A stretch of DNA of 63,659 nt, counting the filler, from Octopus bimaculoides (lineage: Eukaryota): the NCBI RefSeq assembly GCF_001194135.2. It is 8 parts of 6 records of this genome, joined end to end, with 100 filler letters (N's around TTAATTAATTAA, not from the genome) between each part and the next. Parts side by side here need not be neighbours in the genome. Positions count along the whole stretch, not along the records: positions 39,728 to 48,356 come from NC_068997.1; 7 more parts are not named here. One strand, given 5' to 3'. Of the stretch, positions 39,886 to 48,456 are shown piece by piece; positions within the stretch are counted from its first letter, which is position 1; each line of letters starts with the position of its first letter. The translations under genes were made by a program, and so were the position numbers. The notes below the pieces were generated by a model. It saw only the letters and a program-made list of their open reading frames with translations, did no database searches and had not been told where the DNA came from.

Positions 39886-40711
39886 GTAATGAAGAACAAA
39901 TAGTAAAAGGTTGTCATTATAGTAGTCGAGGTGTTTCGAATATCGGTGCGAAGGGCTACGAGGCATTCTCGTCGGCTATTAATACCAATAGATGCCATGA
40001 AGGACCGTTGAATAAAAGGGAAATTAATCCAATAGGTAGAAAAAAAAAAGAAATAATGATAAAAAATATTCACGCAATCATATTTTCACAATACATAGAC
40101 ATAAACCTCCTGCTTTCATAACGTCTTCATACGTACACACTCACCCAAGCAGGTATACGTACATTCACATACACAAACAAACATATATGTGCATGTACGT
40201 ACTCATACATATATACACTTATCCATGCACACACACACACATGTATATATATATATGCATATTTGTACGCAACTTCATCCTCACATGTATTATGTTATGT
40301 GTATGCTTGCAAACACTTATGTGTATATGAGGACGAAGATGTGTACACATATACATATATAAATGTGTGTATGTGTGTGGAAATGTGTGTATGTATGAGT
40401 ATGTACATGCACTTATAGGTTTGTGTGTGTATGTGCATGTACGTATACATATTTGTGTGAATGTGTACGTATGAAGACGTTATGAATGCAGGAGGTTTAT
40501 GGTTTATGTGTTGTGACAATATAGTTGCCTGAATTTTTTTCTTTTTTCTTTCTTTTTCTACCTATTAGAGTAACTTCCCTTTTATTCAAAAGTCTTTCAT
40601 AGCGTCTGTTGCCATTAATAGCCGACGGGAATATATCGTAGCTCTTCGCTCCGACATTTGAAACTCCGAGTACCATAATGATAGCCTTTTAGTGTTAGTT
40701 CAAATTATAAC
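39883..40711. repeat. ~830-bp diverged palindrome centred near 40300
   Basis: Colinear reverse-complement matches along both arms, e.g. 40100-40139 vs 40462-40501 (39/40). Confidence 0.85.
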
Positions 40712-42483: not shown

Positions 42484-42685
42484 TGACAATTTCAGCTTGT
42501 AGAGATAGAGGACGGCCTAATTACTCGCTGAAAACAGTAAACAAGAAAATGTCCAAAGAAGATATTAATTGTAAACTAAGTCTTGACTTGAAAAAATGAA
42601 TTTCATGATATCATGTCATAACATGGTAGTAACATTGATACTGGCGTATTTTTATAAAGAGATTTTACAAATTTATTGCTATATG

Positions 42686-43078
42686 TTGTTGGCACTCCGT
42701 CGCTTACGACGTCGAGGGTTCCAGTTGATCCGATCAACGGAACAGCTTGCTCGTGAAATTAACGTGCAAGTGGCTGAGCACTCCACAGACACGTGTACCC
42801 TTAACGTAGTTCTCGAGGGTAATCAGTGTGACACAGTGTGATACAGTGTGACAAGGCTGACCCTTTGAATTACAGGCACAACAGAAACAGGATGTAAGAG
42901 TGAGAGAAAGTTGTGGTGAAAGAGTACAGCAGGGTTCGCCACCATCCCCTGCCGGAGCCTCGTGGAGCTTTAGGTGTTTTCGCTCAATAAACACTCACAA
43001 CGCCCGGTCTGGGAATCGAAACCGCGATCCTATGACCGCGAATCCGCTGCCCTAACCACTGGGCCATTGCGCCTCCAC
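42686..43078 (-). mobile_element. SINE family 3, full length and apparently young
   Basis: Minus strand GGAGGCGCAATGGCCCAGTGGTTAGG (A box), GGTTTCGATTCC (B box), tail GACGGAGTGCCAACAAC. Confidence 0.9.
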
Positions 43079-43479
43079 TATTGTTATACAATACAAAGTA
43101 AAGCTGCGTGAAACTACATGATTTTATGTTATGTACTTTTGACACGTAAATTTTCAATAGCATATCTTTCTCCTCAGGGATTCCTTTGAAAGAAATACGA
43201 TGTTGAGATGTGAATGAAAGAGCGGTTGAAAGGTGGTTCGCTTCTTAGTTTGCACAGCTTCTTTTGTTTTTAATTGATTAAAATAGCCAATGATGATAAT
43301 GGCAAATCAATCCAGTAAACTTCAGACGTAAACAAAAACACACACAAATACACACACACGCACACATGCGCACACACACCTACACACGTACATATACATA
43401 ACAAATGCTCACAATGGAATATATAGATATATTCAAACTTGTATACATATACCCATACATACATACATACATACATACA

Positions 43480-43620: not shown

Positions 43621-45042
43621 TTATATGCCTTCCTTTCTAGTTGCATACTCTGTTTCCTAGTTACACTAGGTTCTGGCGTTCTCTCTCTGTCTGTCTGTCT
43701 CTCGCTCGCTCGATCTATCTATGATATTCAATTTAATCTCCATTTCAAAGTAAATCTTAGTAATTCATTGGGACCAACAACAATCATGTTGCAATATCTT
43801 GTATTTTATTTCGGTAAGTTCACCTTCTGTTTTCGCTTTGTTGTTGCTGTTGTTATTGCTGTTGTTGTTTGTTGCTGGTTTTCTTGTTGTGCAATATTTC
43901 ATCACCTTGGGCCCCGAAGACGTAGGATGAAATGCCTTGCAGAGTTAACTATAACGTGATTTATTTTATTCGTGTGAATAAAGTCTATCTAGGAGCACAT
44001 TATTCCATGTAACCTTTATGTTTTTAAAGACGACAATAGGCTCCATAATAAGAGGAGATTTAGTCGCTCTTTCTAGCAGGTTAAAACACTTTGTAAATGA
44101 ATCCTTAGCTGAACTGAAGAACGATTACATGGGCGAATTGAGGCACAGTAGCCTGAAATTGGCGCTACTTATTTTATTGCTAACTTGACCTCAGTTCAGG
44201 CTTGATACAGCAGCAGATCTGTAAAAAAAAAACAAAAAACTTTCAGCTTTGACCTTTGTACCTGCACTTGGTCACTTATAACTTGTTACGCACTTCATTG
44301 TTGAGTCGAGTCTTTGTAGTTGTTAGTATTGCAGAGTAGAATTTGAGGCATATTTGGCAACTATTTCTATCATCACAACCGTGTTTCTTAAATGCAATGT
44401 CGACGTTGGCCGTATTTAAACTCAAGACACGGAGAACTGAAACGAAATCTTGAGGCATTCTGACACGACTAATTCACCGATTTCTCATTATTATGAAGCC
44501 CCAAACCCAACGCTCATTGAGCACCCACTTATGCTCAAATACATTCCAGCCGTGATCATTCCGTATATTTTCTAAGAATACTAAACCCGCAACTTCAATA
44601 TTCAATAAGTTTTATTTTTCTGAAACAGGATGTAAAACACTTAAAAAACGTTTGGCTGCTATTTTTACCAGGTCAAGTGCCCAATTAGCGTAGGCTTCGG
44701 CAAACATCTTTTATCATCGACTCTGCCTTCGTTGAATCATTAATAAATTATCGATACACATCATGTAAATTTCTAACATGAAACTAAAATGTATGCTAAT
44801 TAAAAAAAAAAAATTTACAAGAATTCCTTCGTTATTTTGTGCTATTATAGATTTTTAATTAGAAGCATGAAAAGAAATTTAATGCAACTTATTAAAGAAA
44901 GTGATAAAAATAAAGATCATTAATTACCAATTTATTTTTTAAATAGCTACATAGACCCTCAGGGTTCAATATGGACCCCTTTGCGCCCACCTGTCCGAGA
45001 TACGCTTTTGTTGATTTTTTTCTTATTATTATCCTTGTTGCT

Positions 45043-45208
45043 GTTAAGGCGGCGAACTGGCAGAATTGGTAGCGCTCCGGAAGAAATATGTTAAGGGTAC
45101 ACGTGTCTGTGGAGTGCTCAGCCACTTGCGCGTTAATTTCACGAGCAGGCTGTTCCGTTGATCGGATCAACTGGGACCATCGTCGTCGTAACCGACGGAG
45201 TGCTCCTT
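45043..45208 (+). mobile_element. Chimeric SINE: family 2 head fused to family 3 tail
   Basis: AAGGCGGCGAACTGGCAGAATTGGTAGC followed by TTAAGGGTACACGTGTCTGTGGAGTGCTCAGCC...GACGGAGTGC. Confidence 0.6.
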
Positions 45209-45976
45209 TGATTAGGAATAGAACAGAAAAAAATTTAAGTGATTATAAAAATATCACGGATTAGCTGGAACACAATTTCTTGTATCTCGTAACATACTAG
45301 GAAGCAACAAATTTAATTCAAGTGATACAAATAATATCAAAAGAAAATCTAAGACATCTTTAAATCTATGATAATGAGGAAAGAAATTTTATCTAAATCA
45401 GTAATTAATCCTAAAGATGGATTTTAAACTATTATCTAATTAAATGAAAAAGCCAAAGGTGATATACTTTATCAAANNNNNNNNNNNNNNNNNNNNNNNN
45501 NNNNNNNNNNNNNNNNNNNNNNNNNNNNNNNNNNNNNNNNNNNNNNNNNNNNNNNNNNNNNNNNNNNNNNNNNNNNNNNNNNNNNNNNNNNNNNNNNNNN
45601 NNNNNNNNNNNNNNNNNNNNNNNNNNNNNNNNNNNNNNNNNNNNNNNNNNNNNNNNNNNNNNNNNNNNNNNNNNNNNNNNNNNNNNNNNNNNNNNNNNNN
45701 NNNNNNNNNNNNNNNNNNNNNNNNNNNNNNNNNNNNNNNNNNNNNNNNNNNNNNNNNNNNNNNNNNNNNNNNNNNNNNNNNNNNNNNNNNNNNNNNNNNN
45801 NNNNNNNNNNNNNNNNNNNNNNNNNNNNNNNNNNNNNNNNNNNNNNNNNNNNNNNNNNNNNNNNNNNNNNNNNNNNNNNNNNNNNNNNNNNNNNNNNNNN
45901 NNNNNNNNNNNNNNNNNNNNNNNNNNNNNNNNNNNNNNNNNNNNNNNNNNNNNNNNNNNNNNNNNNNNNAAATATG

Positions 45977-46023
<47 letters not shown>

Positions 46024-47316
46024 CTCAAAAGTAAATATACTCGCCTCATACCGTTTCTTTTTGTGCGGACACGACTCATTACTACGATGCATCAAAACGG
46101 TAACATCATTAAATACTGTACAAGGCGTTTGTAAAAATAGTAAATAAAATATTTCAACCTATCAGATGACATTATTTTGTTTGTTGAAAAATAAATCTTA
46201 TGGAAATGATGTCGAATATTTACTTTCAAGATGTCTGTGCATTTACGAGTGTTATACCGAAACTCATGCGAATGTGGACATAACATTTTTATTACTTCTT
46301 ATAAATCGTTCAAATTACAAAATATTGTTGCAAAGTTTTAGAACAGCAGATATTGTTAATACCTTGACAAACGCTACTATGTTTTCTTCTCCATGCCCTA
46401 TATCGCACAGCACCGAGAATCTCCGCTCAACATTTTATTAAATAAGTCCTCAATACTATATTCTGAGGCTGTCAAGCGAATCATTTTAGTTTAGTGGTCT
46501 TCATTCTTTTAGGGCACCAGAGTTTCCAAAACATAACGTCCAATATGATCTGGTGTTCAGGACGATATCGATGGCCAGCAACGCCTACACTCTGAAGAAA
46601 TCAGAGGAATTTGTAAATCTTGCATTTGGTGTTCTTCTCATGGCACGATATGTTTTGAGCCCTTATGAAAAGCCCGGTGTACCCACAACCAAAGTGTCCT
46701 TGAATATCATACTTCATAGTTATAGTTTCGGTTCCGTTGAAAAGAATGCTCTTTACATATGGCCTAAGAAACGTCAAAATTATTAAGTTGGAATTACTTG
46801 GTTCCAAGATGAGTGAAGTTTTCCAGATGTTGTTACAGGCATCAAATGGCTCCCTTCGGTCTCCGGATGTCTTTCTGACTGACGAAAGCATAAGAGTACA
46901 ATTGTTTTAAATCATTGAAGTCTTTCAGTTTTGTGCCATGTTTGAGACAAATAGGCTCGTAACATTTGATAGTGACAAAATAAGTGCAATATTACCCACC
47001 TTTTTTTTTTTTTTTGTAGTATCGCAGATAAGATTAAAAAAGCCGTCACTATTATCTTTGAAAACCTTTCAAACTATGCATTACTTTTCATTTTTCAAAT
47101 GTAATAATGAATAGATATTAATGAAACGCTTTTTAATTTTAATGAAGCGCTTGCACTAATTTAAGATAAATAAAACTCTCCGTCACATTTAGTGAAACAA
47201 AAGGCCAACTCTTGAGAACTAGAAGTCACAGCTCTACTATTGCAGTGAAGCAGCTTCTAGATTAATCCTAAATTTAATTTCTTTATAATTGAATATATTT
47301 CGACTTCTCATTTCAG

Positions 47317-47346
47317 GATTGGAAGCAGTGATGCAGAAGAAAAAAG
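47317..47346 (+). CDS. 30-nt phase 1-1 micro-exon, (G)LEAVMQKKK
   Basis: Acceptor CTTCTCATTTCAG, donor GTATGTAAGT, open in phase 1. Confidence 0.6.
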
Positions 47347-47380
47347 GTATGTAAGTTGAAAAGTACACCACACACACACA

Positions 47381-47466
<86 letters not shown>

Positions 47467-47574
47467 AATATGTATATATACACATACACACAGACATCTC
47501 AAAAGTAAATATACTTAGATTAATCCTAAATTTAATTTCTTTATAATTATATTTATTTCGTCTTCTCATTTCAG

Positions 47575-47607
47575 CAGTGAATCCAGTGGTGAATGATCTG
47601 GGAACAG
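47575..47607 (+). CDS. 33-nt (30-nt by NAGNAG) phase 1-1 micro-exon, (A)VNPVVNDLGT
   Basis: Same acceptor and donor context as 47317-47346; CAG|CAG tandem acceptor; open in phase 1. Confidence 0.6.
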
Positions 47608-47645
47608 GTATGTAAGTTGAGAAACACACCACACACGCACACACG

Positions 47646-47700
<55 letters not shown>

Positions 47701-47992
47701 NNNNNNNNNNNNNNNNNNNNNNNNNNNNNNNNNNNNNNNNNNNNNNNNNNNNNNTATATGCATTCACATACATGCATACATACATACATACATACATACA
47801 TACATACATACATACATGCTTGCATACGTACATACATACATACATACATACATACATACATACATACATACATACATGCATATATTTTATTTAAATTGCA
47901 TAAATATTTGTGTGTGAAAGAAATTCTTCAACGCTGATCGTTTGGCCCAGCAGTTTACTGTATCTTGTATTTATTTTCCTGTTTCGTTGCAG

Positions 47993-48247
47993 AAGACGTT
48001 GGTTTCCCGAACAGAAAGAAGTTTATGAAACTCTTCAACACTGGACCTGAAAAAAATGTTACGGGAATAAAAATGAATCTAACACTCGAAAATTGTGCAG
48101 ATGCATGTCTGAAAATGGAGACATGTAAATCTTTTATGGCCCACGATAATACAACCGAATGCATTTTGTACGAGACCTGGAGCGGCGAAATCAGATACCA
48201 ATCTTTAAAGGAAGAAAACTACTACTACTATCAAAAAATATTAGATG
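47993..48247 (+). CDS. 255-nt phase 1-1 exon encoding a PAN/apple domain of a probably extracellular protein
   Basis: Acceptor TTTTCCTGTTTCGTTGCAG, donor GTAAAC; CADACLKMETCKSF...ECILY four-Cys PAN pattern ending YYYQK; three N-x-T sequons. Confidence 0.8.
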
Positions 48248-48456
48248 GTAAACATTCTTCTTCTTCTTCTTCTTCTTCTTCTTCTTCTTCTTCTTCTTCT
48301 TCTTCTTCTTCTTCTTCTTCTTCTTCTTCTTCTTCTTCTTCTTCTTCTTCTTCTTCNNNNNNNNNNNNNNNNNNNNNNNNNNNNNNNNNNNNNNNNNNNN
48401 TTAATTAATTAANNNNNNNNNNNNNNNNNNNNNNNNNNNNNNNNNNNNNNNNNNNN

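Follow-up and report, generated by a model that had tools for sequence, protein, structure and literature searches.

The window analysed here is a stretch of 63,659 nt from Octopus bimaculoides, and the piece under study is the ~8.6 kb between its positions 39,728 and 48,356, whose letters come from NC_068997.1. This piece corresponds to the 5′ part of the O. bimaculoides gene LOC106868212, as given by the database names of the two proteins found with its PAN/apple exon as query. Upstream of that exon lie two very short exons in tandem (exA, 30 nt, and exB, 33 nt), which we consider to be the probable outcome of an ordinary tandem duplication, in one octopus lineage, of a signal-peptide micro-exon situated in a recombination-prone block. 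By alignment, exB is the homologue of a conserved second signal-peptide exon and exA is an extra, lineage-specific upstream copy. The sequences used for comparison were the chromosome-level O. bimaculoides sequence of the locus (GCA_001194135.2; hereafter L001, the same sequence as the window) and a gap-free O. vulgaris locus (L002). Gene models are designated P0001 (XP_014768861.2), P0027 (XP_014768861.1), P0002 (UniProt A0A0L8HWE5) and P0026 (UniProt A0A0L8HWE2), and two further proteins P0028 (O. sinensis) and P0007 (O. vulgaris). The features of the locus, in window positions, are the following.

43786–43813, plus strand: coding part of exon 1 (ATG, 25 nt and G; MLQYLVFYF, phase 1), with donor GTAAGT at 43814.
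45970–46327, plus strand: orphan (CA)n-tail-R flank, beginning directly after the gap at 45477–45969; its tail matches the unit A tail.
46319–47078, plus strand: intronic segment X, holding an open reading frame (ORF; 46571–46774) and a poly-T run (47001–47016).
47072–47257, plus strand: upstream flank (upL and L) of the micro-exon block, from alignments to L001 and L002.
47258–47515, plus strand: unit A (head, exA, donor, (CA)n and tail).
47258–47316, plus strand: unit A head (branch point, polypyrimidine tract and AG).
47317–47346, plus strand: exA, 30 nt, GLEAVMQKKK, AG/GT borders, phase 1-1.
47347–47359, plus strand: unit A donor, GTATGTAAGTTGA, 13 nt.
~47365–47464 and 47465–47515, plus strand: unit A (CA)n and 51-nt tail.
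47516–47700, plus strand: unit B (head, exB, donor and (CA)n up to the gap).
47516–47574, plus strand: unit B head, 59 nt.
47575–47607, plus strand: exB, 33 nt, AVNPVVNDLGT, AG/GT borders, phase 1-1; an alternative NAGNAG acceptor at 47578 would give 30 nt.
47608–47620 and 47624–47700, plus strand: unit B donor and (CA)n, the latter running into the gap.
47701–47754, no strand: assembly gap within the exB–PAN intron.
47755–47992, plus strand: (ACAT)n (47766–47882, Tandem Repeats Finder), then the 3′ end of the intron, unique in sequence and closed by the acceptor ...TTTCGTTGCAG.
47993–48247, plus strand: PAN/apple exon, 255 nt, phase 1-1, EDVGFPNRKKF...YYQKILD, AG/GT borders, donor GTAAAC; followed by (TTC)34 and the contig end.

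The repeat finder returned two copies spaced 258 nt from start to start (47258–47333 and 47516–47591; 87% identity over 76 nt). Each unit opens with a 59-nt head, whose last letters are TTCTCATTTCAG; the exon and the donor GTATGTAAGTTGA come next, then (CA)n (~50 repeats in unit A and at least 39 in unit B). In unit A a 51-nt tail follows, which adjoins the head of unit B at the tail/head junction 47515/47516. Within the 8.6-kb piece the head was found only twice (BLAST: 59 nt, 93%, E = 1e-20), apart from a 15-nt donor match, and no sign that the unit is a dispersed repeat was found within the 125 kb examined, where it occurs only at micro-exon positions. exA, exB and the PAN exon are all of phase 1-1, and the frame is kept in whatever combination they are joined; exB reads open only in the phase 1-1 joining frame. 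The downstream exon scores 31.1 bits against Pfam PAN_1 (cut-off 21.4), its translation displays the C-x3-C...C...C pattern, and it is 100% identical to residues 109–192 of P0002, a protein with three PAN_1 stretches (57.9 bits). Thus, the structural part of the first-pass annotation of this DNA, namely a ~260-bp unit occurring twice, with tandemly duplicated micro-exons whose splice sites are intact and which lead in frame into a PAN exon, was confirmed: the period is 258 bp, the heads are 93% identical over 59 nt, the flanks are homologous, the 13-nt donor is identical in both units, and the coordinates, phases and AG/GT borders were verified.

A tblastn search showed that L001 holds two tandem paralogous genes, of which copy 1 is the window gene and copy 2 has its exon 1 at 22575–22602, its micro-exon at 25766–25798 and its PAN exon at 26824–27051. 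The family consists of secreted proteins with three PAN/apple domains, with two tandem genes per locus. The O. sinensis member P0028 starts with MRKRLLFCF/VLNILLNAQGT/VAEANIPSTSKF (slashes mark exon borders), which is a textbook signal peptide with a basic n-region (MRKR), a hydrophobic core (LLFCFVLNILL) and an AQG^T cleavage site; its exon 1 and micro-exon map to L001 22575–22601 and 25766–25798. The signal peptide of the family is split between a 28-nt coding exon 1 (M and 8 residues, phase 1) and a 33-nt phase 1-1 micro-exon (11 residues), which completes the hydrophobic core and adds the cleavage site (...VLNILLNAQG^T). Exon 1 of the window is homologous, in its sequence and its flanks, to the copy 2 exon 1 of O. 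bimaculoides (MWKHLLFCF) and also to that of O. vulgaris (MRKCLLFCF, L002 22929), and exB aligns base for base with the conserved 33-nt exon and keeps the 3′ GGAACAG (Gly-Thr). Therefore, the micro-exon represents the second half of the signal peptide and not a linker in the mature protein. The earlier proposal of a variable linker was abandoned, since in the paralogue, in O. vulgaris and in O. sinensis the exon is a conserved second coding exon carrying the signal-peptide core and the cleavage site.

This assignment bears directly on a second proposal of the first-pass annotation, likeness to the micro-exon genes (MEGs) of Schistosoma. According to this explanation the locus would hold a growing array of symmetric micro-exons which, shaped by diversifying selection, generates a variable extracellular linker by combinatorial skipping. 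It would account for the symmetric 1-1 exons with their frame-neutral 3-nt indel, for exon differences that are nearly all non-synonymous when read codon by codon, for an exon divergence far above that of the flanks, for the skipping of exA in one model (P0002), for an orphan tail after gap 2 that hints at a further unit and for the fast evolution of the whole gene [ratio of non-synonymous to synonymous substitution rates (dN/dS) of ~0.9]. However, only two units are visible; O. vulgaris copies 1 and 2 and O. bimaculoides copy 2 have a single, highly conserved exon (0–1/33 nt); the exon codes for half of a signal peptide and not for mature protein; and the other coding sequence lies in ordinary exons for folded PAN domains. 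We regard this explanation as highly improbable. Set beside MEGs (PMC10526429, PMC4350168), the octopus gene resembles them in its symmetric very short exons, in being a fast-evolving secreted-protein gene and in frame-keeping skipping; it differs from them in having one ancestral micro-exon (two or three in one species) and a mature protein made of PAN domains from normal exons. Both features that define MEGs are lacking: instead of many consecutive symmetric micro-exons making up most of the coding sequence there are two visible ones, the remainder being in exons of 90–255 nt (255, ~240, 90 and ~195 nt), and instead of encoding a variable region of the mature protein they are homologous to the C-terminal half of a signal peptide.

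The same two paralogues are present in O. vulgaris, with exactly one block each (copy 1, L002 588–1127 with its exon at 747–779; copy 2, L002 27583–28126). The order within the O. vulgaris block is L-H-exon-donor-CA-tail-R, and in copy 1 the block is followed by X, then by (ACAT)n and then by the PAN exon (L002 4776–5033), the orthologue of the window's PAN exon with 63% amino-acid identity. In the window the order is gap 2, (CA)n-tail-R, X, upL-L, unit A, unit B, gap 3, (ACAT)n and PAN exon. These correspondences are based on the following alignments: (i) 45970–46327 is 89–90% identical to L001 25999–26345, downstream of the copy 2 micro-exon, and 84–85% identical to L002 798–1127 and 27801–28126, (ii) X is 84% identical to L002 2331–3073 and 3129–3557, in the interval that separates micro-exon and PAN exon in O. 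vulgaris copy 1, (iii) in upL-L, 47106–47258 aligns with L002 27542–27692, 47158–47258 with L002 588–689, and there is also an alignment with L001 25640–25707 and (iv) 47755–47992 is 81–88% identical to L002 4536–4756. The difference in order means that two derived events are needed in O. bimaculoides copy 1. The first would be the 258-bp tandem duplication, marked by the junction at 47515/47516. The second would be a further duplication or transposition that put a copy of the block downstream of X, its mark being the X→upL junction, which was found in O. bimaculoides copy 1 only among the copies examined. The long (CA)n is also specific to O. bimaculoides, O. vulgaris having a short CA-rich stretch at that place. 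The idea of a cassette expanding by tandem duplication is thus retained as far as the two tandem units go, but there is no array (two units visible, possibly three), and the suggested comparison of unit number at related loci gave one unit each in O. vulgaris copies 1 and 2 and in O. bimaculoides copy 2.

Segment X is itself tandemly duplicated in the O. vulgaris intron (L002 2331–3073 and 3129–3557), where a copy of upL is found at L002 1847–1915, away from its block; hence, the intron has been rearranged in both species. A Pfam scan for a transposon origin of X, applied to ORFs in 46041–47257 and elsewhere, gave no credible match. The Rfam scan returned only sub-threshold microsatellite look-alikes of miRNA families, and no tRNA was found by ARAGORN.

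How many units there are depends on the gaps, which the chromosome-level assembly GCA_001194135.2 carries in identical form, none being closed there. The gap at 47701–47754 sits between (CA)n and (ACAT)n in the exB–PAN intron and, being intronic, has no effect on the reading frame. The sequence on its right (47755 onward, including (ACAT)n) has its O. vulgaris orthologue immediately before the PAN exon, with the edge at L002 ~4522, and is therefore ancestral PAN-upstream sequence rather than the missing tail of unit B. Gap 2 (45477–45969, an estimated 493 N) is followed by the orphan tail-R (45970–46327). In every other copy such sequence lies directly downstream of the micro-exon, and since it stands where the downstream flank of the ancestral micro-exon is expected, a third unit may lie within the gap. 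The contig end before the gap (45200–45476), when compared with the sequence upstream of the block in other copies, scored no better than shuffled sequence, and a 12-mer at 45404 (ATTAATCCTAAA, E = 0.04) is for that reason not evidence for a hidden unit.

The gaps also raise the question of an assembly artefact, in which the units would be mis-joined haplotypes or a collapsed or permuted repeat contig, (CA)n tracts being apt to break short-read assemblies. The contig 45970–47700 has (CA)n at either end and is flanked by gaps, its internal order is circularly permuted relative to O. vulgaris, and the gaps persist at chromosome level. Nevertheless, a single contig contains both the 47515/47516 and the X→upL junction, each in unique sequence; two alleles would not show a 43% difference over 30 nt next to one of 8% in the adjoining sequence; and the predicted models join exA to exB, which would be impossible for alleles. 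An artefact of this kind appears very unlikely.

The two exon bodies can be aligned at only ~57–60% identity, with 12–13/30 nt differing and a 3-nt indel, while the flanks of the units are 92–93% identical (4/59 differences upstream and 3/25 downstream); after the identical 13-nt donor, 3–4 differences occur in the next 12–18 nt. The contrast between exon (13/30) and flanks (7/84) is highly significant (Fisher test, p = 5e-5 to 6e-5), and the first-pass annotation was right in finding the exon bodies far more diverged than their flanks. Among O. bimaculoides copy 2 and O. vulgaris copies 1 and 2 the exon differs at 0–1/33 positions while the head differs at 8/58, which means that the ancestral exon is conserved. 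Compared with the exon of these three copies, exB differs at 9–10/33 and exA at 12–13/30 positions, the flanks at 8–13%. Changes were polarised with outgroups, and the neutral interspecific divergence was taken as ~16.5%. The A branch carries 8/30 exon changes versus 4/83 flank changes (p = 0.0025) and the B branch shows no significant acceleration; five positions changed in both exA and exB, two of them to the same base. Relative to the neutral value, divergence is significantly high for exA (13/30, p = 5e-4) and not for exB (9/33, p = 0.08). Only exA, then, looks faster than neutral. In exA some real excess of change seems hard to avoid, and a few multi-nucleotide events (the GAAGAAAAAAG run and the 3-nt deletion) could explain many of its apparent substitutions.

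A different origin of the contrast is suggested by the evolution of the block as a whole. Copies 1 and 2 of the block are 96% identical in O. vulgaris (L002 584–1138 versus 27587–28137), and their R flanks 89% identical in O. bimaculoides (L001 9410–9757 versus 25999–26345), whereas the paralogues are ~70% identical elsewhere in the gene and orthologous blocks ~84% identical. Paralogues within a species are therefore more alike than orthologues over a delimited ~0.55-kb block, the pattern by which concerted evolution is recognized, and this indicates localised gene conversion between paralogues. Because the block evolves in concert, homogenisation of the flanks is a serious alternative for the exon/flank contrast: exB would be an old exon specific to copy 1, exA and exB might be older duplicates, and the flanks would have been homogenised repeatedly between units and paralogues. 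In agreement with this, exB differs from the copy 2 exon at 10/33 positions (30%), matching the coding divergence of the paralogues (29.6%), and its flanks differ at 12% compared with ~28–30% in other non-coding DNA (p = 0.001); in O. vulgaris the block, exon included, is identical in both paralogues. On the other hand, conversion tracts would have to stop at both exon borders, or converted exons would have to be selected against, and yet O. vulgaris tolerates a converted exon. Moreover, exA and exB have derived states in common, in their flanks and at two exon positions, which fits a recent duplication, and the (CA)n expansion, the probable driver of instability, is specific to O. bimaculoides. 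Conversion as the general cause of the contrast is quite possible, although we lean against it; for exB, rapid or complex exon change after a recent duplication and old exons with converted flanks appear comparably likely. Faster change in the exon, as claimed earlier, is one of two explanations, flank homogenisation being the other, and it is better founded for exA than for exB. Our preferred explanation of the contrast is a mixture, probably of rapid or complex change in the redundant copy and of flank homogenisation by gene conversion.

Both micro-exons are already present in public annotation (XP_014768861.1/.2; UniProt A0A0L8HWE2 and A0A0L8HWE5), and the suggestion of an undescribed system does not hold for this reason. 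An exhaustive HMMER search with the PAN exon as query retrieved P0002 (100% identical over the exon) and P0001, the latter mapping onto the window by tblastn; a word-indexed protein search with the concatenated hypothetical protein gave no match. The N-terminus of P0001 and P0027 reads ...WPKKR/LEAVMQKKK/AVNPVVNDLGT/EDVG, corresponding to an intronic-ORF exon, exA, exB and the PAN exon. P0026 starts at the Met within exA and continues through exB into the PAN exon. In P0002 (...MLQYLVFYF/AVNPVVNDLGT/EDVG) exon 1 is joined to exB and then to the PAN exon, exA being skipped. Thus, exB is present in its 33-nt form in all four models, and exA in P0001, P0027 and P0026 but not in P0002.

The omission of exA from the canonical-looking P0002 is among the grounds for viewing it as a decaying pseudo-exon that is rarely or never spliced in, the models taking up any in-frame AG...GT segment and exB alone being functional. 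exA is devoid of the ancestral length and of the Gly-Thr cleavage motif and puts KKK into the hydrophobic core, the NCBI models that bear it are demonstrably chimeric and start in an intronic ORF, and an in-frame indel with no stop in 10 codons is weak evidence of selection (estimated chance ~0.2). The splice signals argue the other way, as the last 20 nt of the acceptor carry a single change and the 13-nt donor none, which leaves both nearly intact, and the exA→exB junction appears in two independent annotation efforts. A neutral exon should also match the divergence of its flanks and not exceed it several-fold (8/30 versus 4/83). On balance we consider a pseudo-exon rather unlikely.

Two side observations concern the starts of these models. 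XP_014768861.1 and XP_014768861.2 join copy 1 exons to the micro-exon and PAN exon of copy 2 (L001 10001–27054; window 46571 onward), and their first coding exon is an intronic ORF (MASNAYTLKK..., window 46571–46774). The first 45 residues of P0002 (MLLALRRLRRRGF...) come from an ORF inside a short interspersed element (SINE)-like repeat of ~390 bp, several copies of which, with 90–93% identity, are found at window 42684–43079 (minus strand) and 45082–45203 and at L001 18123–18500 and 19662–20035; this SINE-derived start is probably an artefact of annotation, the true one, MLQYLVFYF, lying downstream of it.

The duplication of a signal-peptide micro-exon leads to the following scheme. The ancestral structure would have been exon 1, the 33-nt signal-peptide micro-exon and the PAN exon, all joined in phase 1. 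In O. bimaculoides copy 1 a 258-bp segment comprising acceptor flank, micro-exon, donor, (CA)n and tail would have been duplicated in tandem, in a surrounding ~0.55-kb block that appears recombination-prone, with an expanded (CA)n, concerted evolution and one more rearrangement in the same intron. The (CA)n tracts may have promoted the duplication and might influence splicing. With its ancestral length and 3′ Gly-Thr, exB is the likely canonical exon 2 (exon 1→exB→PAN). exA, rich in purines and in Lys and altered by a 3-nt deletion and numerous substitutions, would be an optional cassette that some models contain and another leaves out, and owing to phase 1-1 symmetry the frame is kept with or without it. 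Inclusion of exA would place GLEAVMQKKK in the middle of the signal peptide (MLQYLVFYF-GLEAVMQKKK-AVNPVVNDLGT), and in transcripts starting further downstream exA could provide an internal start, MQKKK. Either outcome would be expected to weaken or abolish secretion rather than diversify the mature protein. The best 11-residue hydrophobic window (Kyte–Doolittle) is 2.94 in the paralogues, 1.96 for exon 1 with exB and 1.83 with exA. In a more elaborate form, exA would be a regulated switch that arose by above-neutral rewriting of the exon body with the flanks kept, so that the PAN protein toggles between secreted and retained states; the length of the neighbouring (CA)n might tune the inclusion of exA, through which the signal peptide would gain a Lys-rich segment or the internal start would become available. 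We judge such a switch improbable.

Several points weigh against the interpretation as duplicated signal-peptide exons. Even without exA the copy 1 signal peptide looks degraded (it lacks a basic n-region, its core contains Asn and Pro, and position −3 is Asp), so that the term rests on homology there and not on function. The public gene models carrying exA and exB are predictions, and those of NCBI are partly wrong, as two paralogues are fused in them and their first coding exon is an intronic ORF whose donor (AAAC/GTCAAA) is weak; inclusion of exA in them is consequently no proof of its splicing. Three gaps in the locus make the unit count uncertain. Finally, a conversion tract sparing the exon on both sides would be awkward, and supra-neutral substitution within 30 nt would be equally so.

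Among known systems, the closest structural fit appears to be ordinary tandem exon duplication, a phenomenon reportedly surveyed by Kondrashov and Koonin in 2001 and by Letunic and co-workers in 2002. The octopus exons are adjacent and homologous together with their flanks, have the same phase and lengths differing by a multiple of 3 (30/33 nt), and retain AG/GT and the identical donor; one copy (exA) appears optional in the gene models. They depart from typical cases in being just 30–33 nt long and part of a signal peptide. Moreover, duplicated or mutually exclusive exons are typically better conserved than introns, but here the exon copies have diverged more than the flanks. Nothing points to mutually exclusive use, since the octopus models hold either both exons or exB alone. 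Patthy's rules of exon shuffling place phase-1 introns at signal-peptide boundaries and recognize class 1-1 exons as mobile extracellular modules. Exon 1, the micro-exon and the PAN exon are likewise joined by phase-1 introns and the PAN exon is a 1-1 module; unlike the situation in those rules, an extra phase-1 intron splits the signal peptide itself and yields a free-standing 33-nt exon. Exons that outdiverge introns are known from genes for toxins and other secreted proteins (snake PLA2, conotoxins), which the octopus gene resembles in having a coding segment more diverged than the adjacent non-coding DNA and a family dN/dS near 1. In conotoxins, however, it is the signal sequence that is conserved, while in the octopus the exon that has diverged is the one for the signal peptide, and this only in a single paralogue of a single species; gene conversion of the flanks is also an alternative for the contrast. 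Intronic CA repeats are said to act as splicing regulators bound by hnRNP L (Hui et al. 2003/2005); by analogy, the CA-rich tract within ~20 nt of each micro-exon donor, with 40–50+ repeats in O. bimaculoides, could belong to this class.

At the level of the family, comparison of O. bimaculoides with O. vulgaris gives a dN/dS of 0.90 (copy 1) or 0.88 (copy 2), the frames being intact and the cysteines conserved; comparison of the paralogues gives 0.5–0.7. Only four database proteins match P0001, and to P0001, P0002 and P0007 of O. vulgaris the exhaustive search added only weaker PAN-domain matches; a literature search for octopus PAN/apple proteins found nothing relevant. The family thus comprises fast-evolving and apparently octopus-restricted secreted proteins. 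The PAN gene cluster may have more members: a third, far more distant PAN-like exon (29% identity to P0028) is found ~33 kb downstream in O. vulgaris, at L002 70276–70479.

Other repeats were noted in the same DNA. The (TTC)n tract at window 48255–48356 starts 8 nt past the PAN exon donor and reaches the contig end, and the copy 2 PAN exon is also trailed by a degenerate TTC/TTG tract (L001 27060–27100 and 23860–23944), so the position of this microsatellite is conserved between the paralogues. A fold-back at 39930–40262/40339–40667, with arms of ~330 nt that are ~81% complementary, 76 nt apart and rich in TG/CA and TA microsatellite, may be a foldback element or one resembling a miniature inverted-repeat transposable element (MITE).

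As it stands, the locus is of little general importance, and interest in it would rise only with regulated exA inclusion shown by transcripts or with a larger array in long reads. The view of it is nevertheless corrected in four respects: the micro-exon is one half of a signal peptide, conserved and encoded on its own; it was duplicated in one octopus lineage; the NCBI model of LOC106868212 fuses two tandem paralogues; and one UniProt model starts within a SINE-like repeat. Within one ~0.55-kb block it offers a compact natural example of microsatellite-associated exon duplication, confined gene conversion and a coding segment that outdiverges its flanks. If inclusion of exA did prove to be under regulation, the locus would show neatly how alternative splicing can act on a secretion signal.

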